NCBI GenBank assembly: GCA_964247055.1
Contig: OZ176052.1
Location: 9,982,001 to 10,046,000 of the forward strand
Length of the DNA stretch: 64,000 nucleotides
Source of the DNA: Paragordius varius
Taxonomy: Eukaryota > Animalia > Nematomorpha
Direction: 5' to 3'
A model generated the notes under the pieces. That model did not search any database. It was not told the DNA's origin and saw only the letters and a program-made list of their open reading frames with translations. Every line of letters starts with the position of its first letter. Position 1 is the first letter of the stretch. The position numbers and the translations under genes are program-made. Of the stretch, positions 11,435 to 64,000 are shown piece by piece.

Positions 11435-17114
<5,680 letters not shown>

Positions 17115-35200: not shown

Positions 35201-38200
35201 TATTTTAATCCGTATTGTTCAACAAAAATGGATTTGACATGTTAAAGGATTATTCTCAAAAATAGAATTTATACACCCAAAAAAAATTTTAAATAAGGTT
35301 CGCAATCAATAATTATAAAAGAATATTTTTATAAATATGGTACCATTTTGTTGTTTGTATCCATCATAAGTCATGGTTTTAGATGCGAATGGCAAGCTAA
35401 GACAATAGGGACTTATAGATGAAGGGAAACAATCAAACTTCCACGTTCCAGTCACCTCATTAAAGGTTCGAAACTTCAGATATTTCAATTTAACTTGAGG
35501 CGGTATAAAGTTTTCAATAATGAGATTGCTATACCAGGATATAAGTATGATTAATATAAAATAAAAAATATTTATGTAAACGACTATAAAGTAAAATAAT
35601 TATACTTAAATTTCATTTCTTTGATCAATTTTTCAATACTCTCGTTGTACAAATCAATATCTTTCTTATATGTTCCATTTAACTCTTTGGCCTCCTTGTT
35701 GAGTTGTTTAAGTTTGTGGTAAAGCTTTGATAAAAAAATATATGTTATATCTGTCGCAAATATAAATAAATACATATTATGTATCATAAAATATGGAATT
35801 TAATTTTATTACGAATTTAAAGTTAATGGTAAAAATATATCGCTAAAAATTAATTTTAATCAAAAACATCAGTAACTTTTTTCATTTTTTTCGATTTGTT
35901 ATCCAACTCAGTCTGTAAGCCGTTTAAAGTTTCTTGAGTGATTAAAGTGTTTTCTTCTGCAACTTCAAGTTGTTTCAAAAAGTCCTGTTCTCTTTTCTAA
36001 ATTAAATATTTGCGCATAAAAGTTTATAAAGAATAATTTTCGTCTCAAAGTATGAAAAATAATAATTATTTAAGTTAAAAAAACCAACCACCTTTTCTTC
36101 AGCTATAAGTTTGCGTTTTGCAATCAAATCACGTTCCTGTTCCGATTGAAAAGTGCGTAATAAATCAATGTTTCCATTTAGTAATTGACTTTCAATCTCC
36201 TGAAATCCATAATAAAAACATTTAAAACATTAAAATTTGGAATATCATTTTTTTTCTATAAAAATAAACATACTTTAATGCGTTGAACTAATTTAGCCTG
36301 GGCCAATTCCTCATCATGTAACATATTTTCGCGGTCTTCTAATTGTGACAATAATCTATTTTTTTCCTTAGGAGAACAATAGCGTAAAATTAAAGATTAA
36401 ATCAAATAAAACACTTACGATAATATAAAGGTTTTTATTAGTTTTACTTTATATATATTCTGCTCAACCTTTCTAATTTTAGCAACAAAAGTATCAACAA
36501 AAGTAGCCAGTTATCCAATTTAAAAGTAAATTTAGATAATATTAAATATTTTAAATAAACTTCCTTGATCATATTGTGATCATTCAGAATTTTTAGGCGT
36601 TCATGTTCAAGATCCTCAAAATTGGTTATTGGTGATATTGGGCCTTCAGGAGATTCATCTATGTACAAATATTGATATATTAATGATATGTAGGCATAAA
36701 ATGGGGTAGCCTATTATTATTTTTATCGAATAAAATATTTTAGATTTTTTAAAAAAATTTTGTAATCTGCATTAAAAAAAAAGTTTAGGGCTTAGAAAAC
36801 CCACGTTTTCTAAAATAGTTTGAAATCTAATTTTCTAGAAGTTTTAAAAAGCAATACTCTCTTTTTTGATAAATTTTTTTTGAATATACCACAAATTATT
36901 GCAAAATATTACCGGAAGGTGAAGTTGGATTATCGCGCACGCTTTTGTTTTGTAATAGAAGCTTCAATCTAGTATTCATAAGATATTATAATTATTATTA
37001 TAAAATATTAGCTATTAGTTGGTTCACTTATTTATAAACTAATTTTATTAAATTAATCGTTTATTTTTTGTTATTTCTAAAATTTGCTTTTGTAGAAAAA
37101 AAGTTATATACCGTTCAATTTCATCTTGATACTTTCGTAAAGTTGCATCTTTGGGGTCTTCATTAATGATTGGGGTATTGCAAATATTTTTAGCACGATT
37201 AGCATAACTATCAAATATTTAAAAGAATTTTTATTGATATTTTCTTAGTTTAAAATTTATATAATATGTATAAACATCAATATATCGTTATAACAAACAT
37301 ATCAAAGTACATTTTTCTAATAATTAATTTTAGGGTAATTAATCGCTATAAATAAAATGATATCTTGTTTTAAGCCATGTTAAGGTTACTTAATGCCTAT
37401 TTAAATTTAAAAAAACACAGAGGTTTTAAAATAGGCGAATAAATTGATAAATAGGGATTTCTGAAACAATAAGGTGATATATAATCTTAACCGTGATCGT
37501 GGGATAAATCACATCTATTAATGCCGTAATAGGTTGATTGAGTCAAATATCATATATAAATATAGATATTATTTAAAAACTTCGTAGACTATAAAGAATT
37601 TACGAAACATTTTCCGACATTATTTAATAACAAAGGACAAGAAGATTGGGAATACCATAAACAAGGATATTATCCGTAAAATATTTATATAATATACGAT
37701 TCACAAAATTCTTTCGTATTTAGATCATAAAAGGTATGATAAATATCCTAAAATCTATTTTTTACTCTTATTTGTTATTTATAAAATTATAGTTTGATTA
37801 ATTAACACTAGCGATTGCTTGCTTTAAATGGTTTATTCCACTTGACGCAAAAAATCTAAAACTTAAAAACTACCTAAAACTGGTTCTTTTAATTAAGGTT
37901 ATAAAAATTTTCGATTAAAAATGTCTTCTTAAAAATAAAGCATAAATTAAATTCAAATAAAAGGTCGCGATCCTACATAGTTAACCATTATTTCAGGATA
38001 AAATTTATTTTTAAATATATATATATATATATATATATACCGTAATGTATTCAAAGTTTCTTCAAAGTTATAATCAGCAGGACCTATGTTTGCAATCATA
38101 ATAGTTTTTGCATTCCCGCCCAATGAATCTGTAATATTATATTTAATTTATACCAAAAATATGAGTTAATACAAGTATAGTTTTTGGTTTTAAAAATTAA

Positions 38201-40807
38201 AATCCAACATAAATTTAATTTTAAGAGATAAAAAATATGGATAAATATCAGAGCTAAGCTTTTTTAATTAATCATAAAATATGAATTTATTAATTATCTT
38301 TTAAAAAAAACTATCAATAACACATACAAAATTCATGTCATTTTCTTAACAGATTAATAAATTTTTCAAAACGTATATTTTTGATACTACCAACATAATT
38401 AAAAAGAAATTTACTACACCAAAATTTAAAAAACTTGAAAAATATTTTGGATAACTCCTAATTTATAAACATGACAAACTTATAAATATTTAAAATTTAT
38501 AAATTTTATTTGTTCACTCATGATACACACATATATCAAATATTTTACTTTGCAGGATGCGAGTTAATTTGGAATCTCGATAAGGTATGTGAGTATTTTT
38601 CCCTTCAGCAATGGCTGATATAACCTTTCCAAGCGTGCAGAGCGATAAATTAATTTTGGTTGATTCTTTAAGGCGTTCACCCTTTAAGATAATAAATTTT
38701 GTAAAGTATTGTTGGTATGTGCATATATAAGATCATTAGTTTTATAATATTGTCATAGGAAAATACATAAATTATGCAACGTTATAAACCATATAAATTA
38801 CAGTATTATACGAATTGTACTTTAATCAAGTGATAAGGGTATATTTCAATATATCACAAAAAACTATGAACCGACAAGTCAATACTATTTTACAAGAAAA
38901 GTGTTTTTTCAATATAATTAGTACTGAAAATAATAAAAGTTAATCAATATCCATGTTTATAATCTCACAAACTCGAATGTTAAAATGTAATAGGCACATA
39001 CATCTTTCAAAAATAATTAAATGATTTAGTCTCTATATAAAAATAAAAATTTTTAAAAATTAGAATGTTTAAATAAATATACCGTGGCTCCAGTTTTTGT
39101 TTGTCGTTCGCTTCCAGCCAGATCTACCAAATTTAATTGACCTACGCACAAGTGTTTCTGTCCCTTTTCATCCGTCTGCAATATAATATAAAAAATAATG
39201 AATGATAATTTATAAGGCTTTAATACACAAATAGGATATTTTATTAAATCAAAATTATTAATATATATTATGCAAATAATTAGCTAATTAAACTCAATAA
39301 AAACACAAGAGAAACGGTACAATAATCAGTTAAAAGCAATTAGTATTTACTCTACTAAATGATATCCTACTTTGGAAGATTCTATGGTAACTATGAATAT
39401 AGCATGGGATCTTGAACTGTGTTCATTCATATTTGTGGCCCTTTAATTAAATTTTTGAAAATATTAAATATATTTATTCAAAAAAATTTAATTTTATATC
39501 GTTAATATGAATTTAAAAAAATATAAATACCCGGTAGAACGATTCACATTGCCACGTTGCATAAGCTCGTATATTTCATCGAAATTTTTGGTAACAATAG
39601 CGGATAGACCCTTTAAATTTTATATATTAAATAATAATAAATAGACTATAATTTAACCGATTAAATGGTATAATCTGCTACATTGCAAAATTCACAAAAA
39701 TTTAACCAATTTAATTTCTGACAAATATAAATAAACTTTATTTTAATATCTAATAATTATTGCATGTGATAAAGAGTAGCAAATTGGAATTGGAAGAAGT
39801 CAGTAATATATATGCAACGGTCCGATTCCAAACAAAAGTATGATTTATTGTTAATGTTAGTAGCGAGCAATTTTTCCAAACATTAAAAAATTCTCGGGAT
39901 ATTTAAAAATAAACAACTAATAATTTTAAATATAATCTTATCAAAAAATAAACAAAATCATGTATATTTATTATAATACTTTCAGTATGCATTTTAATGG
40001 TTGCTTATTTCACACTATAGTTGGGCAATTTGCAACACAATAATGTATGGAAAAAACAACATATTGAATAAACAAAGTAATGTGAGTAAGGAAAATATTA
40101 TTTATTTAACATTGTGTTGTATTTTCCATCTACTACTGTGTTATAAATTAACCAACTAGAGTGTGAAATAAGCAACCATTAAAATGAATACTGTAATGTT
40201 TTAACGGTGATACATAAACCAGAAAGCTTTCCAATTTACCTTAATAAGTATGTTTGTGGTTGTATTTTTGGTCTCTTTAATTTCGATCTTAGCCTCTTTG
40301 TTCGATGAGTCTACCAAAAGATCTTTAATGCATTCCTTGTAAATTTCCAGATAAGATGCTTTAACCAAAAAAGTTGAATTATTTTCTGCAAATATTTTGG
40401 AATATATCTGTTTAAGTGAGAGTGGTATAATACCATCATCTCCGGAACAAGTATTACCTTAAAAATTTACACAACGGAAAACCTTCCATAGTGAATGTTT
40501 TTCCGGTACCAGTTTGTCCATAAGCAAAAATGGTGCCATTAAATCCTTGAATAACAAAATCTATAAGCTCGCTTATACAGCTATCATAGATGTCTTTAGT
40601 CATGGATTCTTGATCAAAAACTTTATCAAAAGTAAACGTATAAGATTTATTAGCTTCATTGCCTAAGATAATTTGATTTTCAATTGAATTAACAACACTA
40701 AATAATAATTTTGATTACTTGAAACATCTTTGCTCTAATTCCTTTTTGGTAAAAGGTCGGATCCTCACTATTACTTTAATGCGTTCATATGAGTTTGTTG
40801 AACACAT
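32283..40807 (-). CDS. Kinesin-2 family motor subunit (KIF3B/KIF3C-like), ~18 exons
   Basis: Spliced translation gives [36 protein letters not shown] (P-loop), NEHSSRSH (switch I), [11 protein letters not shown] (switch II) and [14 protein letters not shown]. Kinesin-2 hallmarks are [16 protein letters not shown], a coiled-coil stalk, LIIENFIP and KKPLSSFGY. Ends SVFKLPK-TAA. The exact orthologue cannot be fixed without a tree. Confidence 0.92.
33387..34769. mobile_element. Foldback element with ~400-bp inverted arms and subterminal ~20-bp repeats, in kinesin intron 16
   Basis: The left arm (ccatttcccagtcaaaaaaacg...cgggactaactc) is the reverse complement of the right arm (gagttagtcccga...ttttttgacaggaaaatag). 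Repeated ttttcccagtcaatcgaaac-type units sit at both ends. Flanked by TA-rich sequence on both sides. Confidence 0.72.
33918..34209. mobile_element. hAT-like MITE nested in the foldback spacer
   Basis: Starts CAGGGGTGTTAAA, ends GTTGGCCACTCCTG, with internal GCGGGCCAC motifs typical of hAT MITEs. No matching TSD seen. Confidence 0.5.
38016..38039. repeat. (TA)n microsatellite directly after a kinesin splice donor
   Basis: The minus-strand intron begins GTATATATAT...; read directly. Confidence 0.9.
40458..40482 (-). other. 25-nt spliceosomal intron (kinesin intron 2)
   Basis: GTTTTCCGTTGTGTAAATTTTTAAG. Removal joins KTFTMEG to [11 protein letters not shown]; the unspliced frame hits TAA. Confidence 0.85.
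40698..40718 (-). other. 21-nt spliceosomal intron (kinesin intron 1)
   Basis: GTAATCAAAATTATTATTTAG contains an in-frame TAA. Removal gives [14 protein letters not shown]...FTFDKVF. Confidence 0.8.
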
Positions 40808-40848
40808 TAATATTCGTAATGTCGTAAATTCAGTTGTTAAGAATTTCG
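40808..40848. promoter_or_regulatory. 41-bp interval between the divergent ATGs of kinesin-2 and PEN-2 (candidate bidirectional or overlapping promoter region)
   Basis: Kinesin ATG at 40807-40805 (minus) and PEN-2 ATG at 40849-40851 (plus). A regulatory role is inferred only. Confidence 0.4.
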
Positions 40849-41154
40849 ATGGATCTGAAAAATTTTGATAATGACGAAAAGTTAAATATCTGCAAGAAAT
40901 ATTTTTATATTGGATTATTTGGCTTACCATGCGTATGGATTGTAAATGTTATATGGTTTTTCCAGGAAGCTTTTTACAAACCAACATACTTCCAACAAAA
41001 ACAGATTAAAACCTATGTATTATACTCTATAATGGGCGCAATCATATATACCACATTAATTATGTCCTGGGTAATAATGTACCAAAAACATCGGATAGAA
41101 TGGGGAGAATTTGGCGAGAAAATAGCTTTAATATTACCAAAAGGATATTTGTGA
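40849..41154 (+). CDS. PSENEN: Gamma-secretase subunit PEN-2 (presenilin enhancer 2), intronless, 101 aa
   Basis: MDLKNFDNDEKLNICKKYFYIG...LPCVWIVNVIWFFQEAF..P.Y.QQKQIKTYV..S...W....RIEWGEFG...LPKG matches the PEN-2 pattern as recalled (MNLERVSNEEKLNLCRKY...LPFLWLVNIFWFFREAF...EQSQIKGYV...RPRWGALG...IPLG) with the same 101-aa length. Confidence 0.95.
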   Translation: MDLKNFDNDEKLNICKKYFYIGLFGLPCVWIVNVIWFFQEAFYKPTYFQQKQIKTYVLYSIMGAIIYTTLIMSWVIMYQKHRIEWGEFGEKIALILPKGYL

Positions 41155-41617
41155 TAATATCCAATAAATTGTATTTTTATAATATTCATTTATTTAATGA
41201 TGGTAAAAGATTAAACTCAGTTAAAATTTGGGAGATTTAAGAAAATATGATGACCATAGTCTGTATAACCGGTTCTAAATCCCACTCATTATGGCTATTG
41301 TCTCTCTAGGTCTCGTTACATCGTTTTTATTATTTCACTTTTATATTTTTTAATGGGCTTGTATAGAATTACAGAGCCCACCGGCTATTAGATCTGATAG
41401 TGCACAGACAAAAAGTCAAGTGTTACAAATTACGATTGATATCGTAAAAATTAAATGTTTTAGAAATTTTATGTGAAGTCTCAACCTTTTTGATAAATAC
41501 ATGCTATAGTTTTCTACAATATCTATTTAAAATTACAGTCAAACCATGTTGTTTCGGATTTTTGCCTCTTTTAGCAAACAATTGTGATCTTTTTTGTGAG
41601 ATACCAATTTTATTATT

Positions 41618-48279: not shown

Positions 48280-51200
48280 TCTATATATTTATAAAAATGG
48301 AAAAGGCTGGCTTTGTGATCTGGTACAGGAAAACCGGTAGACCCAATCAAATCCAAATATCGAAAAAATATAATCATTAATAAATGTCCCGACAATAGCT
48401 TCGCCCTTTTTTTGAAATAGGCCCCCAGTTCGGGCCCACCCCGTATGAAAAACGGGTTTTTTTTGAAAACATAAGTCCACAAAATCGTGTTTTTGAGACA
48501 ATATTCCGGAGAACGTGTTGGACCATTCAATTTCAAATATGAATTTTGTTTACTTATTTTCGATTGCGCCGAACATAGTCGAGCCACTTTTTTGATTTAG
48601 GCCCTCTTTTTACCCGCTACCCCCGTAAAATGCAATTTTTTTCAAAAAAAAATAAAGTCCACAAAAATATTTTTTTGATTGTATTTTTTTGCCCACGGTA
48701 TGAGACTGTAAAAATTCGAGAAAGATTTTTCGTATTGCCTGTTAAAAGGCAAAAATTTTAGTCAAGCGTTTCTTTGATGATAGATGCTGAGTAAGGAGTA
48801 TCTATCATATGCATAGCATGTTAAAAGATATATGGATATTAATACATTATTTATCCTCATCTATATATTTATAAAAATGGAAAAGGCTGGCTTTGTGATC
48901 TGGTACAGGAAAACCGGTAGACCCAATCAAATCCAAATATCGAAAAAATATAATCATTAATAAATGTCCCGACAATAGCTTCGCCCTTTTTTTGAAATAG
49001 GCCCCCAGTTCGGGCCCACCCCGTATGAAAAACGGGTTTTTTTTGAAAACATAAGTCCACAAAATCGTGTTTTTGAGACAATATTCCGGAGAACGTGTTG
49101 GACCATTCAATTTCAAATATGAATTTTGTTTACTTATTTTCGATTGCGCCGAACATAGTCGAGCCACTTTTTTGATTTAGGCCCTCTTTTTACCCGCTCC
49201 CCCCGTAAAATGCCATTTTTTTCAAAAAACAAAGTCCACAAAAATAATTTTCTAAATCGATTTTTCGCCCTAGGTATGAGACCGTAAAAATTCAATAAAG
49301 ATTCCACGTATTGCCTGTTAAAAGGCAAAAATTTTAGTCCACCGTTTATTTGATGATAGCTGCTGGGTAAGGAGCTACCCGCTAAAAACTGATTTTTCAT
49401 ATAATTTTGTGAACTGTTTCCGGAAAACCGGTGATTCCAATCTCCAAATATCGAAAAAATATAATCATTAATGAATGCCCCGACAATAGCTTCGCCCTTT
49501 TTTGGAATTAGGTCCCCAGTTTGGGCCCACCCCGTGTGAAAAATGGGTTAAGTCAATTTTTTGGAGAACGTGTTGGACCATTCAATTTCAAATATGATTT
49601 TTGTTTACTTATTTTCGATTGCGCCGAACATAGTCGAGTCACTTTTTTGATTTAGGCCCTCTTTTTACCCGCTCCCCCCGTAAAATGCCATTTTTTTCAA
49701 AAAAGTCCACAAAAATATTTTTTTGATTGTATTTTTTTGCCCACGGTATGAGACTGTAAAAATTCGAGAAAGATTTTTCGTTTTGCCTGTTAAAAGGCAA
49801 AAATTTTAGTCAAGCGTTTCTTTGATGATAGATGCTGAGTAAGGAGTATCTATCATATGCATAGCATGTTAAAAGATATATGGATATTAATACATTATTT
49901 ATCCTCATCTATATATTTATAAAAATGGAAAAGGCTGGCTTTGTGATCTGGTACAGGAAAACCGGTAGACCCAATCAAATCCAAATATCGAAAAAATATA
50001 ATCATTAATAAATGTCCCGACAATAGCTTCGCCCTTTTTTTGAAATAGGCCCCCAGTTCGGGCCCACCCCGTATGAAAAACGGGTTTTTTTTGAAAACAG
50101 AAGTCCACAAAATCGTGTTTTTGAGACAATATTCCGGAGAACGTGTTGGACCATTCAATTTCAAATATGAATTTTGTTTACTTATTTTCGATTGCGCCGA
50201 ACATAGTCGAGCCACTTTTTTGATTTTGGCCCTCTTTTTACCCGCTCCCCCCGTAAAATGCCATTTTTTTCAAAAAAAAATAAAGTCCACAAAAATATTT
50301 TTTTGATTGTATTTTTTTGCCCACGGTATGAGACTGTAAAAATTCGAGAAAGATTTTTCGTATTGCCTGTTAAAAGGCAAAAATTTTAGTCAAGCGTTTC
50401 TTTGATGATAGATGCTGAGTAAGGAGTATCTATCATATGCATAGCATGTTAAAAGATATATGGATATTAATACATTATTTATCCTCATCTATATATTTAT
50501 AAAAATGGAAAAGGCTGGCTTTGTGATCTGGTACAGGAAAACCGGTAGACCCAATCAAATCCAAATATCGAAAAAATATAATCATTAATAAATGTCCCGA
50601 CAATAGCTTCGCCCTTTTTTTGAAATAGGCCCCCAGTTCGGGCCCACCCCGTATGAAAAACGGGTTTTTTTTGAAAACATAAGTCCACAAAATCGTGTTT
50701 TTGAGACAATATTCCGGAGAACGTGTTGGACCATTCAATTTCAAATATGAATTTTGTTTACTTATTTTCGATTGCGCCGAACATAGTCGAGCCACTTTTT
50801 TGATTTAGGCCCTCTTTTTACCCGCTACCCCCGTAAAATGCAATTTTTTTCAAAAAAAAATAAAGTCCACAAAAATATTTTTTTGATTGTATTGTTTTGC
50901 CCACGGTATGAGACTGTAAAAATTCGAGAAAGATTTTTCGTATTGCCTGTTAAAAGGCAAAAATTTTAGTCAAGCGTTTCTTTGATGATAGATGCTGAGT
51001 AAGGAGTACTTTTTACCCGCTACCCCCGTAAAATGCCATTTTTTTCAAAAAAAAAACAAAGTCCACAAAAATATTTTTTTGATTGTATTTTTTTGCCCAC
51101 GGTATGAGACTGTAAAAATTCGAGAAAGATTTTTCGTATTGCCTGTTAAAAGGCAAAAATTTTAGTCAAGCGTTTCTTTGATGATAGATGCTGAGTAAGG

Positions 51201-54200
51201 AGTATCTATCATATGCATAGCATGTTAAAAGATATATGGATATCAATACATTATTTATCCTCATCTATATATTTATAAAAATGGAAAAGGCTGGCTTTGT
51301 GATCTGGTACAGGAAAACCGGTAGACCCAATCAAATCCAAATATCGAAAAAATATAATCATTAATAAATGTCCCGACAATAGCTTCGCCCTTTTTTTGAA
51401 ATAGGCCCCCAGTTCGGGCCCACCCCGTATGAAAAACGGGTTTTTTTTGAAAACATAAGTCCACAAAATCGTGTTTTTGAGACAATATTCCGGAGAACGT
51501 GTTGGACCATTCAATTTCAAATATGAATTTTGTTTACTTATTTTCGATTGCGCCGAACATAGTCGAGCCACTTTTTTGATTTAGGCCCTCTTTTTACCCG
51601 CTACCCCCGTAAAATGCAATTTTTTTCAAAAAAAAATAAAGTCCACAAAAATATTTTTTTGATTGTATTTTTTTGCCCACGGTATGAGACTGTAAAAATT
51701 CGAGAAAGATTTTTCGTATTGCCTGTTAAAAGGCAAAAATTTTAGTCCACCGTTTATTTGATGATAGCTGCTGGGTAAGGAGCTACCCGCTAAAAACTGA
51801 TTTTTCATATAATTTTGTGAACTGTTTCCGGAAAACCGGTGATTCCAATCTCCAAATATCGAAAAAATATAATCATTAATGAATGCCCCGACAATAGCTT
51901 CGCCCTTTTTTGGAATTAGGTCCCCAGTTTGGGCCCACCCCGTGTGAAAAATGGGTTAAGTCAATTTTTTGGAGAACGTGTTGGACCATTCAATTTCAAA
52001 TATGATTTTTGTTTACTTATTTTCGATTGCGCCGAACATAGTCGAGTCACTTTTTTGATTTAGGCCCTCTTTTTACCCGCTCCCCCCGTAAAATGCCATT
52101 TTTTTCAAAAAAGTCCACAAAAATATTTTTTTGATTGTATTTTTTTGCCCACGGTATGAGACTGTAAAAATTCGAGAAAGATTTTTCGTTTTGCCTGTTA
52201 AAAGGCAAAAATTTTAGTCAAGCGTTTCTTTGATGATAGATGCTGAGTAAGGAGTATCTATCATATGCATAGCATGTTAAAAGATATATGGATATTAATA
52301 CATTATTTATCCTCATCTATATATTTATAAAAATGGAAAAGGCTGGCTTTGTGATCTGGTACAGGAAAACCGGTAGACCCAATCAAATCCAAATATCGAA
52401 AAAATATAATCATTAATAAATGTCCCGACAATAGCTTCGCCCTTTTTTTGAAATAGGCCCCCAGTTCGGGCCCACCCCGTATGAAAAACGGGTTTTTTTT
52501 GAAAACAGAAGTCCACAAAATCGTGTTTTTGAGACAATATTCCGGAGAACGTGTTGGACCATTCAATTTCAAATATGAATTTTGTTTACTTATTTTCGAT
52601 TGCGCCGAACATAGTCGAGCCACTTTTTTGATTTAGGCCCTCTTTTTACCCGCTCCCCCCGTAAAATGCCATTTTTTTCAAAAAACAAAGTCCACAAAAA
52701 TAATTTTCTAAATCGATTTTTCGCCCTAGGTATGAGACCGTAAAAATTCAATAAAGATTCCACGTATTGCCTGTTAAAAGGCAAAAATTTTAGTCCACCG
52801 TTTATTTGATGATAGCTGCTGGGTAAGGAGCTACCCGCTAAAAACTGATTTTTCATATAATTTTGTGAACTGTTTCCGGAAAACCGGTGATTCCAATCTC
52901 CAAATATCGAAAAAATATAATCATTAATGAATGCCCCGACAATAGCTTCGCCCTTTTTTGGAATTAGGTCCCCAGTTTGGGCCCACCCCGTGTGAAAAAT
53001 GGGTTAAGTCAATTTTTTGGAGAACGTGTTGGACCATTCAATTTCAAATATGATTTTTGTTTACTTATTTTCGATTGCGCCGAACATAGTCGAGTCACTT
53101 TTTTGATTTAGGCCCTCTTTTTACCCGCTCCCCCCGTAAAATGCCATTTTTTTCAAAAAAGTCCACAAAAATATTTTTTTGATTGTATTTTTTTGCCCAC
53201 GGTATGAGACTGTAAAAATTCGAGAAAGATTTTTCGTTTTGCCTGTTAAAAGGCAAAAATTTTAGTCAAGCGTTTCTTTGATGATAGATGCTGAGTAAGG
53301 AGTATCTATCATATGCATAGCATGTTAAAAGATATATGGATATTAATACATTATTTATCCTCATCTATATATTTATAAAAATGGAAAAGGCTGGCTTTGT
53401 GATCTGGTACAGGAAAACCGGTAGACCCAATCAAATCCAAATATCGAAAAAATATAATCATTAATAAATGTCCCGACAATAGCTTCGCCCTTTTTTTGAA
53501 ATAGGCCCCCAGTTCGGGCCCACCCCGTATGAAAAACGGGTTTTTTTTGAAAACATAAGTCCACAAAATCGTGTTTTTGAGACAATATTCCGGAGAACGT
53601 GTTGGACCATTCAATTTCAAATATGAATTTTGTTTACTTATTTTCGATTGCGCCGAACATAGTCGAGCCACTTTTTTGATTTAGGCCCTCTTTTTACCCG
53701 CTACCCCCGTAAAATGCAATTTTTTTCAAAAAAAAATAAAGTCCACAAAAATATTTTTTTGATTGTATTGTTTTGCCCACGGTATGAGACTGTAAAAATT
53801 CGAGAAAGATTTTTCGTATTGCCTGTTAAAAGGCAAAAATTTTAGTCAAGCGTTTCTTTGATGATAGATGCTGAGTAAGGAGTACTTTTTACCCGCTACC
53901 CCCGTAAAATGCCATTTTTTTCAAAAAAAAAACAAAGTCCACAAAAATATTTTTTTGATTGTATTTTTTTGCCCACGGTATGAGACTGTAAAAATTCGAG
54001 AAAGATTTTTCGTATTGCCTGTTAAAAGGCAAAAATTTTAGTCAAGCGTTTCTTTGATGATAGATGCTGAGTAAGGAGTATCTATCATATGCATAGCATG
54101 TTAAAAGATATATGGATATCAATACATTATTTATCCTCATCTATATATTTATAAAAATGGAAAAGGCTGGCTTTGTGATCTGGTACAGGAAAACCGGTAG

Positions 54201-57200
54201 ACCCAATCAAATCCAAATATCGAAAAAATATAATCATTAATAAATGTCCCGACAATAGCTTCGCCCTTTTTTTGAAATAGGCCCCCAGTTCGGGCCCACC
54301 CCGTATGAAAAACGGGTTTTTTTTGAAAACATAAGTCCACAAAATCGTGTTTTTGAGACAATATTCCGGAGAACGTGTTGGACCATTCAATTTCAAATAT
54401 GAATTTTGTTTACTTATTTTCGATTGCGCCGAACATAGTCGAGCCACTTTTTTGATTTAGGCCCTCTTTTTACCCGCTCCCCCCGTAAAATGCCATTTTT
54501 TTCAAAAAACAAAGTCCACAAAAATAATTTTCTAAATCGATTTTTCGCCCTAGGTATGAGACCGTAAAAATTCAATAAAGATTCCACGTATTGCCTGTTA
54601 AAAGGCAAAAATTTTAGTCCACCGTTTATTTGATGATAGCTGCTGGGTAAGGAGCTACCCGCTAAAAACTGATTTTTCATATAATTTTGTGAACTGTTTC
54701 CGGAAAACCGGTGATTCCAATCTCCAAATATCGAAAAAATATAATCATTAATGAATGCCCCGACAATAGCTTCGCCCTTTTTTGGAATTAGGTCCCCAGT
54801 TTGGGCCCACCCCGTGTGAAAAATGGGTTAAGTCAATTTTTTGGAGAACGTGTTGGACCATTCAATTTCAAATATGATTTTTGTTTACTTATTTTCGATT
54901 GCGCCGAACATAGTCGAGTCACTTTTTTGATTTAGGCCCTCTTTTTACCCGCTCCCCCCGTAAAATGCCATTTTTTTCAAAAAAGTCCACAAAAATATTT
55001 TTTTGATTGTATTTTTTTGCCCACGGTATGAGACTGTAAAAATTCGAGAAAGATTTTTCGTTTTGCCTGTTAAAAGGCAAAAATTTTAGTCAAGCGTTTC
55101 TTTGATGATAGATGCTGAGTAAGGAGTATCTATCATATGCATAGCATGTTAAAAGATATATGGATATTAATACATTATTTATCCTCATCTATATATTTAT
55201 AAAAATGGAAAAGGCTGGCTTTGTGATCTGGTACAGGAAAACCGGTAGACCCAATCAAATCCAAATATCGAAAAAATATAATCATTAATAAATGTCCCGA
55301 CAATAGCTTCGCCCTTTTTTTGAAATAGGCCCCCAGTTCGGGCCCACCCCGTATGAAAAACGGGTTTTTTTTGAAAACAGAAGTCCACAAAATCGTGTTT
55401 TTGAGACAATATTCCGGAGAACGTGTTGGACCATTCAATTTCAAATATGAATTTTGTTTACTTATTTTCGATTGCGCCGAACATAGTCGAGCCACTTTTT
55501 TGATTTTGGCCCTCTTTTTACCCGCTCCCCCCGTAAAATGCCATTTTTTTCAAAAAAAAATAAAGTCCACAAAAATATTTTTTTGATTGTATTTTTTTGC
55601 CCACGGTATGAGACTGTAAAAATTCGAGAAAGATTTTTCGTATTGCCTGTTAAAAGGCAAAAATTTTAGTCAAGCGTTTCTTTGATGATAGATGCTGAGT
55701 AAGGAGTATCTATCATATGCATAGCATGTTAAAAGATATATGGATATTAATACATTATTTATCCTCATCTATATATTTATAAAAATGGAAAAGGCTGGCT
55801 TTGTGATCTGGTACAGGAAAACCGGTAGACCCAATCAAATCCAAATATCGAAAAAATATAATCATTAATAAATGTCCCGACAATAGCTTCGCCCTTTTTT
55901 TGAAATAGGCCCCCAGTTCGGGCCCACCCCGTATGAAAAACGGGTTTTTTTTGAAAACATAAGTCCACAAAATCGTGTTTTTGAGACAATATTCCGGAGA
56001 ACGTGTTGGACCATTCAATTTCAAATATGAATTTTGTTTACTTATTTTCGATTGCGCCGAACATAGTCGAGCCACTTTTTTGATTTAGGCCCTCTTTTTA
56101 CCCGCTACCCCCGTAAAATGCAATTTTTTTCAAAAAAAATAAAGTCCACAAAAATATTTTTTTGATTGTATTTTTTTGCCCACGGTATGAGACTGTAAAA
56201 ATTCGAGAAAGATTTTTCGTATTGCCTGTTAAAAGGCAAAAATTTTAGTCAAGCGTTTCTTTGATGATAGATGCTGAGTAAGGAGTACTTTTTACCCGCT
56301 ACCCCCGTAAAATGCCATTTTTTTCAAAAAAAAAACAAAGTCCACAAAAATATTTTTTTGATTGTATTTTTTTGCCCACGGTATGAGACTGTAAAAATTC
56401 GAGAAAGATTTTTCGTATTGCCTGTTAAAAGGCAAAAATTTTAGTCAAGCGTTTCTTTGATGATAGATGCTGAGTAAGGAGTATCTATCATATGCATAGC
56501 ATGTTAAAAGATATATGGATATCAATACATTATTTATCCTCATCTATATATTTATAAAAATAAAGGCTGGCTTTGTGATCTGGTACAGGAAAACCGGTAG
56601 ACCCAATCAAATCCAAATATCGAAAAAATATAATCATTAATAAATGTCCCGACAATAGCTTCGCCCTTTTTTTGAAATAGGCCCCCAGTTCGGGCCCACC
56701 CCGTATGAAAAACGGGTTTTTTTTGAAAACAGAAGTCCACAAAATCGTGTTTTTGAGACAATATTCCGGAGAACGTGTTGGACCATTCAATTTCAAATAT
56801 GAATTTTGTTTACTTATTTTCGATTGCGCCGAACATAGTCGAGCCACTTTTTTGATTTAGGCCCTCTTTTTACCCGCTCCCCCCGTAAAATGCCATTTTT
56901 TTCAAAAAACAAAGTCCACAAAAATAATTTTCTAAATCGATTTTTCGCCCTAGGTATGAGACCGTAAAAATTCAATAAAGATTCCACGTATTGCCTGTTA
57001 AAAGGCAAAAATTTTAGTCCACCGTTTATTTGATGATAGCTGCTGGGTAAGGAGCTACCCGCTAAAAACTGATTTTTCATATAATTTTGTGAACTGTTTC
57101 CGGAAAACCGGTGATTCCAATCTCCAAATATCGAAAAAATATAATCATTAATGAATGCCCCGACAATAGCTTCGCCCTTTTTTGGAATTAGGTCCCCAGT

Positions 57201-60200
57201 TTGGGCCCACCCCGTGTGAAAAATGGGTTAAGTCAATTTTTTGGAGAACGTGTTGGACCATTCAATTTCAAATATGATTTTTGTTTACTTATTTTCGATT
57301 GCGCCGAACATAGTCGAGTCACTTTTTTGATTTAGGCCCTCTTTTTACCCGCTCCCCCCGTAAAATGCCATTTTTTTCAAAAAAGTCCACAAAAATATTT
57401 TTTTGATTGTATTTTTTTGCCCACGGTATGAGACTGTAAAAATTCGAGAAAGATTTTTCGTTTTGCCTGTTAAAAGGCAAAAATTTTAGTCAAGCGTTTC
57501 TTTGATGATAGATGCTGAGTAAGGAGTATCTATCATATGCATAGCATGTTAAAAGATATATGGATATTAATACATTATTTATCCTCATCTATATATTTAT
57601 AAAAATGGAAAAGGCTGGCTTTGTGATCTGGTACAGGAAAACCGGTAGACCCAATCAAATCCAAATATCGAAAAAATATAATCATTAATAAATGTCCCGA
57701 CAATAGCTTCGCCCTTTTTTTGAAATAGGCCCCCAGTTCGGGCCCACCCCGTATGAAAAACGGGTTTTTTTTGAAAACAGAAGTCCACAAAATCGTGTTT
57801 TTGAGACAATATTCCGGAGAACGTGTTGGACCATTCAATTTCAAATATGAATTTTGTTTACTTATTTTCGATTGCGCCGAACATAGTCGAGCCACTTTTT
57901 TGATTTTGGCCCTCTTTTTACCCGCTCCCCCCGTAAAATGCCATTTTTTTCAAAAAAAAATAAAGTCCACAAAAATATTTTTTTGATTGTATTTTTTTGC
58001 CCACGGTATGAGACTGTAAAAATTCGAGAAAGATTTTTCGTATTGCCTGTTAAAAGGCAAAAATTTTAGTCAAGCGTTTCTTTGATGATAGATGCTGAGT
58101 AAGGAGTATCTATCATATGCATAGCATGTTAAAAGATATATGGATATTAATACATTATTTATCCTCATCTATATATTTATAAAAATGGAAAAGGCTGGCT
58201 TTGTGATCTGGTACAGGAAAACCGGTAGACCCAATCAAATCCAAATATCGAAAAAATATAATCATTAATAAATGTCCCGACAATAGCTTCGCCCTTTTTT
58301 TGAAATAGGCCCCCAGTTCGGGCCCACCCCGTATGAAAAACGGGTTTTTTTTGAAAACATAAGTCCACAAAATCGTGTTTTTGAGACAATATTCCGGAGA
58401 ACGTGTTGGACCATTCAATTTCAAATATGAATTTTGTTTACTTATTTTCGATTGCGCCGAACATAGTCGAGCCACTTTTTTGATTTAGGCCCTCTTTTTA
58501 CCCGCTCCCCCCGTAAAATGCCATTTTTTTCAAAAAACAAAGTCCACAAAAATAATTTTCTAAATCGATTTTTCGCCCTAGGTATGAGACCGTAAAAATT
58601 CAATAAAGATTCCACGTATTGCCTGTTAAAAGGCAAAAATTTTAGTCCACCGTTTATTTGATGATAGCTGCTGGGTAAGGAGCTACCCGCTAAAAACTGA
58701 TTTTTCATATAATTTTGTGAACTGTTTCCGGAAAACCGGTGATTCCAATCTCCAAATATCGAAAAAATATAATCATTAATGAATGCCCCGACAATAGCTT
58801 CGCCCTTTTTTGGAATTAGGTCCCCAGTTTGGGCCCACCCCGTGTGAAAAATGGGTTAAGTCAATTTTTTGGAGAACGTGTTGGACCATTCAATTTCAAA
58901 TATGATTTTTGTTTACTTATTTTCGATTGCGCCGAACATAGTCGAGTCACTTTTTTGATTTAGGCCCTCTTTTTACCCGCTCCCCCCGTAAAATGCCATT
59001 TTTTTCAAAAAAGTCCACAAAAATATTTTTTTGATTGTATTTTTTTGCCCACGGTATGAGACTGTAAAAATTCGAGAAAGATTTTTCGTTTTGCCTGTTA
59101 AAAGGCAAAAATTTTAGTCAAGCGTTTCTTTGATGATAGATGCTGAGTAAGGAGTATCTATCATATGCATAGCATGTTAAAAGATATATGGATATTAATA
59201 CATTATTTATCCTCATCTATATATTTATAAAAATGGAAAAGGCTGGCTTTGTGATCTGGTACAGGAAAACCGGTAGACCCAATCAAATCCAAATATCGAA
59301 AAAATATAATCATTAATAAATGTCCCGACAATAGCTTCGCCCTTTTTTTGAAATAGGCCCCCAGTTCGGGCCCACCCCGTATGAAAAACGGGTTTTTTTT
59401 GAAAACAGAAGTCCACAAAATCGTGTTTTTGAGACAATATTCCGGAGAACGTGTTGGACCATTCAATTTCAAATATGAATTTTGTTTACTTATTTTCGAT
59501 TGCGCCGAACATAGTCGAGCCACTTTTTTGATTTTGGCCCTCTTTTTACCCGCTCCCCCCGTAAAATGCCATTTTTTTCAAAAAAAAATAAAGTCCACAA
59601 AAATATTTTTTTGATTGTATTTTTTTGCCCACGGTATGAGACTGTAAAAATTCGAGAAAGATTTTTCGTATTGCCTGTTAAAAGGCAAAAATTTTAGTCA
59701 AGCGTTTCTTTGATGATAGATGCTGAGTAAGGAGTATCTATCATATGCATAGCATGTTAAAAGATATATGGATATTAATACATTATTTATCCTCATCTAT
59801 ATATTTATAAAAATGGAAAAGGCTGGCTTTGTGATCTGGTACAGGAAAACCGGTAGACCCAATCAAATCCAAATATCGAAAAAATATAATCATTAATAAA
59901 TGTCCCGACAATAGCTTCGCCCTTTTTTTGAAATAGGCCCCCAGTTCGGGCCCACCCCGTATGAAAAACGGGTTTTTTTTGAAAACATAAGTCCACAAAA
60001 TCGTGTTTTTGAGACAATATTCCGGAGAACGTGTTGGACCATTCAATTTCAAATATGAATTTTGTTTACTTATTTTCGATTGCGCCGAACATAGTCGAGC
60101 CACTTTTTTGATTTAGGCCCTCTTTTTACCCGCTACCCCCGTAAAATGCAATTTTTTTCAAAAAAAAATAAAGTCCACAAAAATATTTTTTTGATTGTAT

Positions 60201-63200
60201 TGTTTTGCCCACGGTATGAGACTGTAAAAATTCGAGAAAGATTTTTCGTATTGCCTGTTAAAAGGCAAAAATTTTAGTCAAGCGTTTCTTTGATGATAGA
60301 TGCTGAGTAAGGAGTACTTTTTACCCGCTACCCCCGTAAAATGCCATTTTTTTCAAAAAAAAAACAAAGTCCACAAAAATATTTTTTTGATTGTATTTTT
60401 TTGCCCACGGTATGAGACTGTAAAAATTCGAGAAAGATTTTTCGTATTGCCTGTTAAAAGGCAAAAATTTTAGTCAAGCGTTTCTTTGATGATAGATGCT
60501 GAGTAAGGAGTATCTATCATATGCATAGCATGTTAAAAGATATATGGATATCAATACATTATTTATCCTCATCTATATATTTATAAAAATGGAAAAGGCT
60601 GGCTTTGTGATCTGGTACAGGAAAACCGGTAGACCCAATCAAATCCAAATATCGAAAAAATATAATCATTAATAAATGTCCCGACAATAGCTTCGCCCTT
60701 TTTTTGAAATAGGCCCCCAGTTCGGGCCCACCCCGTATGAAAAACGGGTTTTTTTTGAAAACATAAGTCCACAAAATCGTGTTTTTGAGACAATATTCCG
60801 GAGAACGTGTTGGACCATTCAATTTCAAATATGAATTTTGTTTACTTATTTTCGATTGCGCCGAACATAGTCGAGCCACTTTTTTGATTTAGGCCCTCTT
60901 TTTACCCGCTACCCCCGTAAAATGCAATTTTTTTCAAAAAAAAATAAAGTCCACAAAAATATTTTTTTGATTGTATTTTTTTGCCCACGGTATGAGACTG
61001 TAAAAATTCGAGAAAGATTTTTCGTATTGCCTGTTAAAAGGCAAAAATTTTAGTCCACCGTTTATTTGATGATAGCTGCTGGGTAAGGAGCTACCCGCTA
61101 AAAACTGATTTTTCATATAATTTTGTGAACTGTTTCCGGAAAACCGGTGATTCCAATCTCCAAATATCGAAAAAATATAATCATTAATGAATGCCCCGAC
61201 AATAGCTTCGCCCTTTTTTGGAATTAGGTCCCCAGTTTGGGCCCACCCCGTGTGAAAAATGGGTTAAGTCAATTTTTTGGAGAACGTGTTGGACCATTCA
61301 ATTTCAAATATGATTTTTGTTTACTTATTTTCGATTGCGCCGAACATAGTCGAGTCACTTTTTTGATTTAGGCCCTCTTTTTACCCGCTCCCCCCGTAAA
61401 ATGCCATTTTTTTCAAAAAAGTCCACAAAAATATTTTTTTGATTGTATTTTTTTGCCCACGGTATGAGACTGTAAAAATTCGAGAAAGATTTTTCGTTTT
61501 GCCTGTTAAAAGGCAAAAATTTTAGTCAAGCGTTTCTTTGATGATAGATGCTGAGTAAGGAGTATCTATCATATGCATAGCATGTTAAAAGATATATGGA
61601 TATTAATACATTATTTATCCTCATCTATATATTTATAAAAATGGAAAAGGCTGGCTTTGTGATCTGGTACAGGAAAACCGGTAGACCCAATCAAATCCAA
61701 ATATCGAAAAAATATAATCATTAATAAATGTCCCGACAATAGCTTCGCCCTTTTTTTGAAATAGGCCCCCAGTTCGGGCCCACTCCGTATGAAAAACGGG
61801 TTTTTTTTGAAAACAGAAGTCCACAAAATCGTGTTTTTGAGACAATATTCCGGAGAACGTGTTGGACCATTCAATTTCAAATATGAATTTTGTTTACTTA
61901 TTTTCGATTGCGCCGAACATAGTCGAGCCACTTTTTTGATTTTGGCCCTCTTTTTACCCGCTCCCCCCGTAAAATGCCATTTTTTTCAAAAAAAAATAAA
62001 GTCCACAAAAATATTTTTTTGATTGTATTTTTTTGCCCACGGTATGAGACTGTAAAAATTCGAGAAAGATTTTTCGTATTGCCTGTTAAAAGGCAAAAAT
62101 TTTAGTCAAGCGTTTCTTTGATGATAGATGCTGAGTAAGGAGTATCTATCATATGCATAGCATGTTAAAAGATATATGGATATTAATACATTATTTATCC
62201 TCATCTATATATTTATAAAAATGGAAAAGGCTGGCTTTGTGATCTGGTACAGGAAAACCGGTAGACCCAATCAAATCCAAATATCGAAAAAATATAATCA
62301 TTAATAAATGTCCCGACAATAGCTTCGCCCTTTTTTTGAAATAGGCCCCCAGTTCGGGCCCACCCCGTATGAAAAACGGGTTTTTTTTGAAAACAGAAGT
62401 CCACAAAATCGTGTTTTTGAGACAATATTCCGGAGAACGTGTTGGACCATTCAATTTCAAATATGAATTTTGTTTACTTATTTTCGATTGCGCCGAACAT
62501 AGTCGAGCCACTTTTTTGATTTAGGCCCTCTTTTTACCCGCTACCCCCGTAAAATGCAATTTTTTTCAAAAAAAAATAAAGTCCACAAAAATATTTTTTT
62601 GATTGTATTTTTTTGCCCACGGTATGAGACTGTAAAAATTCGAGAAAGATTTTTCGTATTGCCTGTTAAAAGGCAAAAATTTTAGTCAAGCGTTTCTTTG
62701 ATGATAGATGCTGAGTAAGGAGTATCTATCATATGCATAGCATGTTAAAAGATATATGGATATCAATACATTATTTATCCTCATCTATATATTTATAAAA
62801 ATAAAGGCTGGCTTTGTGATCTGGTACAGGAAAACCGGTAGACCCAATCAAATCCAAATATCGAAAAAATATAATCATTAATAAATGTCCCGACAATAGC
62901 TTCGCCCTTTTTTTGAAATAGGCCCCCAGTTCGGGCCCACCCCGTATGAAAAACGGGTTTTTTTTGAAAACAGAAGTCCACAAAATCGTGTTTTTGAGAC
63001 AATATTCCGGAGAACGTGTTGGACCATTCAATTTCAAATATGAATTTTGTTTACTTATTTTCGATTGCGCCGAACATAGTCGAGCCACTTTTTTGATTTA
63101 GGCCCTCTTTTTACCCGCTCCCCCCGTAAAATGCCATTTTTTTCAAAAAACAAAGTCCACAAAAATAATTTTCTAAATCGATTTTTCGCCCTAGGTATGA

Positions 63201-64000
63201 GACCGTAAAAATTCAATAAAGATTCCACGTATTGCCTGTTAAAAGGCAAAAATTTTAGTCCACCGTTTATTTGATGATAGCTGCTGGGTAAGGAGCTACC
63301 CGCTAAAAACTGATTTTTCATATAATTTTGTGAACTGTTTCCGGAAAACCGGTGATTCCAATCTCCAAATATCGAAAAAATATAATCATTAATGAATGCC
63401 CCGACAATAGCTTCGCCCTTTTTTGGAATTAGGTCCCCAGTTTGGGCCCACCCCGTGTGAAAAATGGGTTAAGTCAATTTTTTGGAGAACGTGTTGGACC
63501 ATTCAATTTCAAATATGATTTTTGTTTACTTATTTTCGATTGCGCCGAACATAGTCGAGTCACTTTTTTGATTTAGGCCCTCTTTTTACCCGCTCCCCCC
63601 GTAAAATGCCATTTTTTTCAAAAAAGTCCACAAAAATATTTTTTTGATTGTATTTTTTTGCCCACGGTATGAGACTGTAAAAATTCGAGAAAGATTTTTC
63701 GTTTTGCCTGTTAAAAGGCAAAAATTTTAGTCAAGCGTTTCTTTGATGATAGATGCTGAGTAAGGAGTATCTATCATATGCATAGCATGTTAAAAGATAT
63801 ATGGATATTAATACATTATTTATCCTCATCTATATATTTATAAAAATGGAAAAGGCTGGCTTTGTGATCTGGTACAGGAAAACCGGTAGACCCAATCAAA
63901 TCCAAATATCGAAAAAATATAATCATTAATAAATGTCCCGACAATAGCTTCGCCCTTTTTTTGAAATAGGCCCCCAGTTCGGGCCCACCCCGTATGAAAA
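48280..64000 (+). repeat. Complex satellite array (~580-bp A monomer, ~470-bp B variant, 196-bp partial), Helitron-derived, runs off the window end
   Basis: Twenty A-unit heads (TCTATATATTTATAAAAAT) at 48280, 48860, 49908, 50488, 51264, 52316, 53364, 54140, 55188, 55768, 56543, 57588, 58168, 59216, 59796, 60572, 61624, 62204, 62784 and 63829. Copies are near-identical. Confidence 0.97.

Follow-up and report, generated by a model that had tools for sequence, protein, structure and literature searches.

The 64,000-nucleotide (nt) stretch of the Paragordius varius genome considered here, hereafter the window (Nematomorpha; assembly GCA_964247055.1, contig OZ176052.1, positions 9,982,001 to 10,046,000), is A+T-rich, with a G+C content of 23-35%, and carries on its minus strand a kinesin-2 gene whose coding region is interrupted near its 5' end by two segments of merely 21 and 25 nt. 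Each of these segments, GTAATCAAAATTATTATTTAG and GTTTTCCGTTGTGTAAATTTTTAAG, is found once, on the minus strand at 40718-40698 and 40482-40458, respectively. This agrees exactly with the first-pass annotation, which had described a 21-nt segment with an in-frame TAA and a frameshifting 25-nt segment within the kinesin-2 motor domain. With both segments removed, the gene runs from the ATG at 40804 to a TGA at 35308-35306 and comprises 16 exons and 15 introns, and the resulting coding sequence of 1896 nt, corresponding to 631 codons, is devoid of internal stops. The gene was traced by open frames and splice signals, the joined frame served for counting length and stop codons, and database searches were performed exon by exon. 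The coordinates of all features are compiled in Table 1.

Judged by its sequence, the encoded protein is a rather divergent KIF3-type kinesin-2. The Pfam kinesin motor family (PF00225) matches seven of its exons, and the P-loop, switch I and switch II (DLAGSE) are all present. Among proteins of known structure, KIF3B and KIF3C (PDB 3b6u, 3b6v) together with OSM-3/KIF17 (7a3z) constitute the best sequence matches of exons 2, 3 and 9. In particular, exon 2, which ends at chain residue 120, is most similar to KIF3C and KIF3B, while the best match of exon 3 is KIF3B (3b6u), with exon residues 7-65 corresponding to chain residues 129-185. The neck exon, featuring the neck NEDPKDA-LR-YQ-EI, has OSM-3, KIF3B and KIF3C as its top matches. 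Loop L5 lacks one residue relative to KIF3B, and with 631 amino acids the protein as a whole is short. A word search with exon 2 returned fragments of 47-71% identity, all from other phyla, and the fragments named in the word search comprised a 'kinesin-II 95 kDa subunit' and a 'kinesin family protein 3/17'. The top exon 2 word match, L001, resembles kinesin-1 and stems from an AT-rich organism that is unrelated, and it was dismissed as a close relative. In an exhaustive search of 1.84 billion proteins, exon 3 reached 39-57% identity to the representatives, with none above 57%, and the two best scores belonged to proteins with duplicated motor domains. No partner-subunit gene was noticed within the 64-kilobase (kb) window, in which no search aimed at partners was made. 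An intact KIF3-type kinesin-2 is retained in this genome although most ciliary genes are reportedly missing from Nematomorpha (PMC12094185, citing Cunha et al. 2023), and the protein may fulfil a non-ciliary transport role.

Table 1. Coordinates of the kinesin-2 gene and of other features within the window (MITE, miniature inverted-repeat transposable element).
Feature	Position	Strand	Characteristics
Kinesin-2 exon 1	40719..40804	-	ATG at 40804; ends with two bases of a split Asn codon; beta-1 motif IKVIVRIRP alignable with the N-termini of kinesins
Kinesin-2 intron 1	40698..40718	-	21 nt, GTAATC...TTTAG; phase 2; 86% A+T; in-frame TAA at its bases 2-4
Kinesin-2 exon 2	40483..40697	-	215 nt; carries the P-loop and the FTFD motif; covers positions 32-93 of the Pfam Kinesin model (E 4.4e-22)
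Kinesin-2 intron 2	40458..40482	-	25 nt, GTTTTC...TTAAG; 72% A+T; splits the TMEG Gly codon in phase 1
Kinesin-2 exon 3	40240..40457	-	218 nt; loop L5, GIIP, SYLEIY; covers positions 99-162 of the Pfam Kinesin model (E 3.2e-12)
Kinesin-2 intron 3	39611..40239	-	629 nt; first of 13 ordinary introns; contains the MITE-like repeat
Kinesin-2 exons 4-16 and introns 4-15	35306..39610	-	Switch I (NEHSSRSH), switch II (DLAGSE), kinesin-2 neck, tail with LIIENFIPP
MITE-like palindrome in intron 3	39980..40196		87-nt arms, 84% complementary
(TA)n microsatellite	38001..38046		Starts directly at the intron 8 donor (CG/GTATATATAT...)
GT..AG segment in 5' part of MCM4	16986..17010	-	25 nt, GTTTTATT...TTTAG; removal joins two open frames
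Second GT..AG segment in MCM4	16596..16620	-	25 nt, GTTTTTTATT...TTCAG
PEN-2 gene (gamma-secretase subunit)	40849..41154	+	Intronless; Pfam E 9e-35; head-to-head with kinesin-2
Long tandem array	48280..64000		G+C up to ~35%; repeated open frames and GT..AG matches; period ~0.6-2.4 kb

All 15 introns of the model, including the 21-nt and the 25-nt segment, are bounded by GT and AG. In the 5' to 3' direction their lengths amount to 21, 25, 629, 90, 195, 401, 420, 833, 143, 254, 194, 74, 95, 152 and 77 nt, with a median of 152 nt. The two tiny segments are hence introns 1 and 2, and their size is not typical within the gene, the other 13 introns spanning 74-833 nt. The chance that both tiny introns rank as the first two of 15 is 1 in 105. 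With respect to base composition, the exons contain 66% A+T, the tiny introns 86% and 72%, and the long introns 76-92%. The donor sites carry a G at position +5 in only 2 of the 15 introns, A or T at +3 in 14 and T at +4 in eight. At the acceptor sites, position -3 is never a G, and the acceptors of the tiny introns, TTTAG and TTAAG, are like those of the longer introns, five of which (out of 13) end in AAAG and one more in TAAG. In addition, the tiny introns exhibit T-rich 3' ends (TTATTATTTAG, AAATTTTTAAG) and runs of A located 8-11 nt from the AG, features that are drawn from two to four examples only. As a separate observation on intron 8, its donor coincides with the start of a (TA)n microsatellite (Table 1).

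The reading frame depends on the absence of both segments. When the 21-nt segment is left in place, the frame opened by the ATG at 40804 ends at a TAA after 29 codons, and when the 25-nt segment is left in place, the frame continuing past TFTMEG reads ...FPLCKFLR and then likewise encounters a TAA. Removal of both yields an unbroken frame and continuous Pfam kinesin coverage, which substantiates the initial statement that they must be taken out to connect the motor motifs. The match to the kinesin model proceeds unbroken across the junctions, from positions 32-93 in exon 2 to positions 99-162 in residues 6-68 of exon 3, with nothing extra or missing in the model at the 25-nt junction. The chain numbering of KIF3B and KIF3C leads across the same junction from residue 120 at the end of exon 2 to residues 129-130 at exon 3 residues 7-8. 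Moreover, among the 160 deletions of 12-45 nt between conserved anchors that reopen the frame at the first site, exactly one is bounded by GT and AG; at the second site this applies to 4 of the 201 frame-reopening deletions of 12-45 nt. By chance, only ~0.2-0.3 such deletions per site are expected from p(GT)=0.038 and p(AG)=0.039.

Orthologous genes of distant animals harbor introns at the very same positions. The corresponding genomic loci were reached via fragmentary public proteins that end just past TFTMEG. Since alignment of the short N-terminal pieces by MAFFT put the three final exon 1 residues in the wrong place, the match of intron 1 rests on an ungapped count from the RP motif together with the DNA itself. 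Intron 1 is a phase 2 intron located 13 codons past the R of this motif (TTC AA/gt...ag/T GTT, slashes denoting the splice junctions). Identical offset and phase are encountered in the brachiopod Lingula anatina (CAA AG/gt...ag/G ATT, 593 nt), in the roundworm Toxocara canis (CAA AG/gt...ag/T ATT, 447 nt) and in the flatworm Heterobilharzia americana (GAG AG/gt...ag/G TGT, 40 nt). Intron 2 interrupts the Gly codon of TMEG in phase 1 (GAA G/gt...ag/GT), and this codon and phase are common to Lingula, Toxocara, Heterobilharzia (35 nt) and the animal contig L004 (1064 nt), the last of which is devoid of intron 1. That codon and phase should agree by coincidence with genes of three phyla at two sites independently is very unlikely, and both introns are therefore regarded as the same ancestral introns. 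In the genome of H. americana (GCA_944470555.2, L005 6001-12449), the KIF3B-like gene is annotated as two models of 112 and 644 amino acids, which are split exactly at the 35-nt intron.

Both segments are also present in genomic DNA from independent samples. The DNA contig of the best-matching sequencing run covers 40351-40789 and spans both segments without a gap, and a contig of 1033 nt from a second sample (40168-41200) spans both with a single 1-nt gap that is unlocated. A further contig of the second sample (40304-40608) spans the 25-nt segment gap-free, and the length of this segment is unchanged in DNA contigs of two samples. Since the segments are carried by contigs of independent samples, they do not constitute assembly errors. 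Compared to the window, the second sample differs by ~1% in the exon-rich stretch and by 3-8% in the long introns, a lower divergence of the exon-rich part being what constraint would give. Among the differences listed, two fall within exons 1-3, one of them synonymous and the other a Phe/Tyr change. At position 40691, one DNA run shows a synonymous change. At position 40722, all three covering DNA runs read T where the window has A, which turns the codon just before intron 1 from TTC (Phe) to TAC (Tyr), and the base in the window may represent a minor allele or a consensus error.

Taken together, the two segments are, with a probability of about 0.85, genuine U2-type GT-AG spliceosomal introns of ancestral origin that shrank in this lineage and represent introns 1 and 2 of the 15 found in an intact KIF3-like gene. 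This corresponds to the view expressed in the first-pass annotation, which had favored ultra-short introns over recoding or error, and it draws on the open 16-exon model, on introns of three to four distant animals that are identical in position and phase, and on the independent DNA samples, from which excision is deduced. According to this scenario, old introns, whose codon and phase are shared by the orthologues of lophotrochozoans and nematodes, would have been reduced to near the physical minimum, while introns further 3' in the kinesin-2 gene kept lengths of 74-833 nt. A conventional U2-type spliceosome would pair both ends across the intron. Its recognition of the introns would involve a reduced donor, GT(A/T) without a G at +5, an A/T-rich body, and a stretch of T's followed by a (T/A)AG acceptor, and the A run 8-11 nt from the AG possibly acts as branch site, as was proposed for myxozoans (PMC13644364). 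Retention of either intron would lead to a TAA almost at once, rendering the unspliced mRNA translationally dead and probably prone to degradation.

Several points weigh against this interpretation. Introns of less than 30 nt beside introns of 800 nt within one animal gene are without published precedent, and two to four tiny introns are too few for the definition of any branch-point motif. A search of sequencing runs for the locus gave no RNA run, the four best runs on 35300-41200 all being represented by DNA contigs. In addition, neither word searches with exon 2 and PEN-2 nor the exhaustive search with exon 3 yielded an orthologue from any close relative. Finally, the boundaries of intron 2 are less constrained than those of intron 1, as further solutions of 13, 31 and 43 nt exist, each of which is bounded by GT and AG and leaves the frame open.

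This last point gives rise to the alternative that survives best, although it is improbable: intron 2 would be real and have other ends, being 43 nt (40482-40440, giving TME-DD-GIIP), 31 nt (40470-40440, giving TMEGFPLY-DGIIP) or 13 nt in length. A 43-nt intron would be ordinary in size, and the donor of the 31-nt form at 40470, GTAAAT, is identical to the donor of intron 3. On the other hand, both the 31-nt and the 43-nt form need the acceptor CCGGAG, whose G at position -3 is used by none of the 13 longer introns, and the DNA by which they extend beyond the 25-nt form (40457-40440) is exon-like, with 56% A+T. Moreover, the 43-nt form would leave hardly any of loop L5 and would cost TMEG its conserved Gly, the 31-nt form shifts the intron off the conserved codon, and an intron of 13 nt would be smaller than any known spliceosomal intron. 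By argument from conserved position, acceptor sequence and length of loop L5, we therefore prefer the 25-nt form.

It is considerably less probable still that the locus is a decaying pseudogene, or that the two interruptions are assembly or sequencing artefacts, with their GT..AG ends being coincidental. An in-frame stop combined with a frameshift is typical of pseudogenes, and the aforementioned search for RNA runs came back empty. Against this stand the intact state of the other 631 codons, of every catalytic motif and of 13 pairs of splice sites, and the fact that both lesions fall on conserved intron positions in the correct phase. The contigs of independent DNA samples, two of them gap-free and one with the unlocated 1-nt gap over 1033 nt, oppose an artefact, and of the differences listed, those within exons 1-3 amount to a synonymous and a Phe/Tyr change.

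Slightly less credible again is a removal by non-spliceosomal means, either by RNA cleavage of the IRE1/XBP1 or tRNA-endonuclease type or by somatic excision at the DNA level, resembling the eliminated sequences of ciliates. The unconventional intron of XBP1 measures 23-26 nt, and the segments, at 21-25 nt, are close in size to it as well as to short ciliate eliminated sequences. Unlike at introns of the IRE1/XBP1 type, however, no pair of stem-loops is present at the junctions, and the flanks show no folding beyond that of shuffled sequence (z = -0.73 and +0.58). Furthermore, the GT..AG ends reside at ancestral spliceosomal intron positions, and among the joints listed there is no DNA contig in which either segment is skipped. 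Hardly any weight is left for mRNA that keeps both segments and relies on ribosomal read-through of the TAA at the first site and on a programmed frameshift at the second: 21 nt is a multiple of three, but read-through would add seven and the shift eight residues at places free of insertions in all orthologues, the fold check of the flanks revealed neither a slippery site nor a structure at the segments, and recoding is unlikely because it cannot mend a frameshift of 25 nt and because no in-frame stop occurs in the remaining 631 codons. The former argument against recoding, namely that TAA terminates three genes of the window, could not be reproduced, as kinesin-2 and PEN-2, the two genes checked, both end with TGA.

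The kinesin-2 gene is not the only one in the window with such segments. MCM4 needs the removal of two 25-nt segments near its 5' end, both bounded by GT and AG, between which an intron of ~78 nt is situated. A further 25-nt GT..AG candidate at 2549-2573 was discarded as it lies in non-coding DNA, and a homology-free scan of the whole window for frame-restoring GT..AG removals proved too noisy, given that the boundary dinucleotides tracked the G+C bias of coding sequence. An Rfam search of the window returned no RNA family.

Regarding the surroundings of the kinesin-2 gene, its immediate neighbor is the PEN-2 gene, and just 44 nt separate the start codons of the two, leaving almost no space for two promoters and two 5' untranslated regions. 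In the word search with PEN-2, no protein with three common 5-residue words was obtained. The MITE-like palindrome in intron 3 displays a word depth in the DNA runs that is ~1000-fold above that of its flanks and thus belongs to a very abundant repeat family. Towards the end of the window, a long tandem array follows (Table 1).

Introns of less than 30 nt have long been held to be absent from animals. A survey of 51 genomes from September 2026 located animal introns below 30 bp only in myxobolid Myxozoa and in Dicyema japonicum; the ultra-short introns of Henneguya, Thelohanellus, Myxobolus and Dicyema japonicum have medians of 22-27 bp, which illustrates that animal spliceosomes cope with such sizes in those groups (PMC13644364). 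No nematomorph is mentioned in the text of this survey, a literature search yielded no paper joining Nematomorpha with short introns, and the word intron is absent from the preprint on the Gordionus genome. The published Gordionus genome features 26.9% G+C and 64% repeats, with which the genome of the window agrees in G+C content and repeat load. The kinesin-2 introns resemble those of Myxobolidae and Dicyema in that they are GT-AG introns below 30 nt at conserved positions, with donors approximating GTa and A/T-rich bodies, and in that their hosts are parasitic. In those groups, however, genomes are compact, tiny introns are the norm and their neighbors are short, whereas here 13 of 15 introns measure 74-833 nt and the surroundings are rich in repeats, including the MITE-like element of intron 3 and a satellite of 15 kb close by.

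Another parallel is provided by schistosomes, where the sgtp2/3 genes of S. mansoni have first introns of 31-41 bp and large 3' introns (PMC4653847). As in these genes, the smallest introns of the kinesin-2 gene are located at its front and large ones follow, and the homologous KIF3 introns of Heterobilharzia measure 40 and 35 nt. With 21 and 25 nt, the introns described here are nevertheless shorter than the schistosome examples of 31-41 nt. A comparable size is reached in ciliates, whose introns comprise ~25 nt in Paramecium and 15-16 nt in Stentor (PMC5014332, PMC13644364). Besides size, the likeness extends to the consequence of retention, which exposes a premature stop in both cases, one intron having a length divisible by three together with a stop in frame, and the other a length that is not divisible by three. 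Jaillon and colleagues reportedly described in 2008 such a rule for Paramecium, according to which retention exposes premature stops, and the present introns fit it, albeit in two to four cases only. Unlike the nematomorph, ciliates are unicellular, all of their introns are tiny, and some of them use other genetic codes.

Relative to the known ultra-short introns, the novelty in all likelihood consists in spliceosomal introns of this size that are restricted in position and coexist with long introns. It is a far more tentative proposition, and a doubtful one at present, that the lineage evolved a distinct class of cap-proximal introns of 20-33 nt beside ordinary and kilobase-sized ones, which would amount to a third and mechanistically different animal origin of introns below 30 nt. 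The occurrence of extreme sizes in a repeat-rich genome, exclusively at the front of a gene with introns of up to 833 nt, separates miniaturisation from genome compaction and points to a position-dependent rule with a polarity reminiscent of schistosomes. The gene thereby offers a natural test of the minimum distance needed by the animal spliceosome. Moreover, tiny introns create apparent stops and frameshifts and break automatic gene models, for which the split annotation of the KIF3B-like gene of Heterobilharzia at its 35-nt intron is a concrete case, and they may thus inflate estimates of gene loss in a little-studied phylum.

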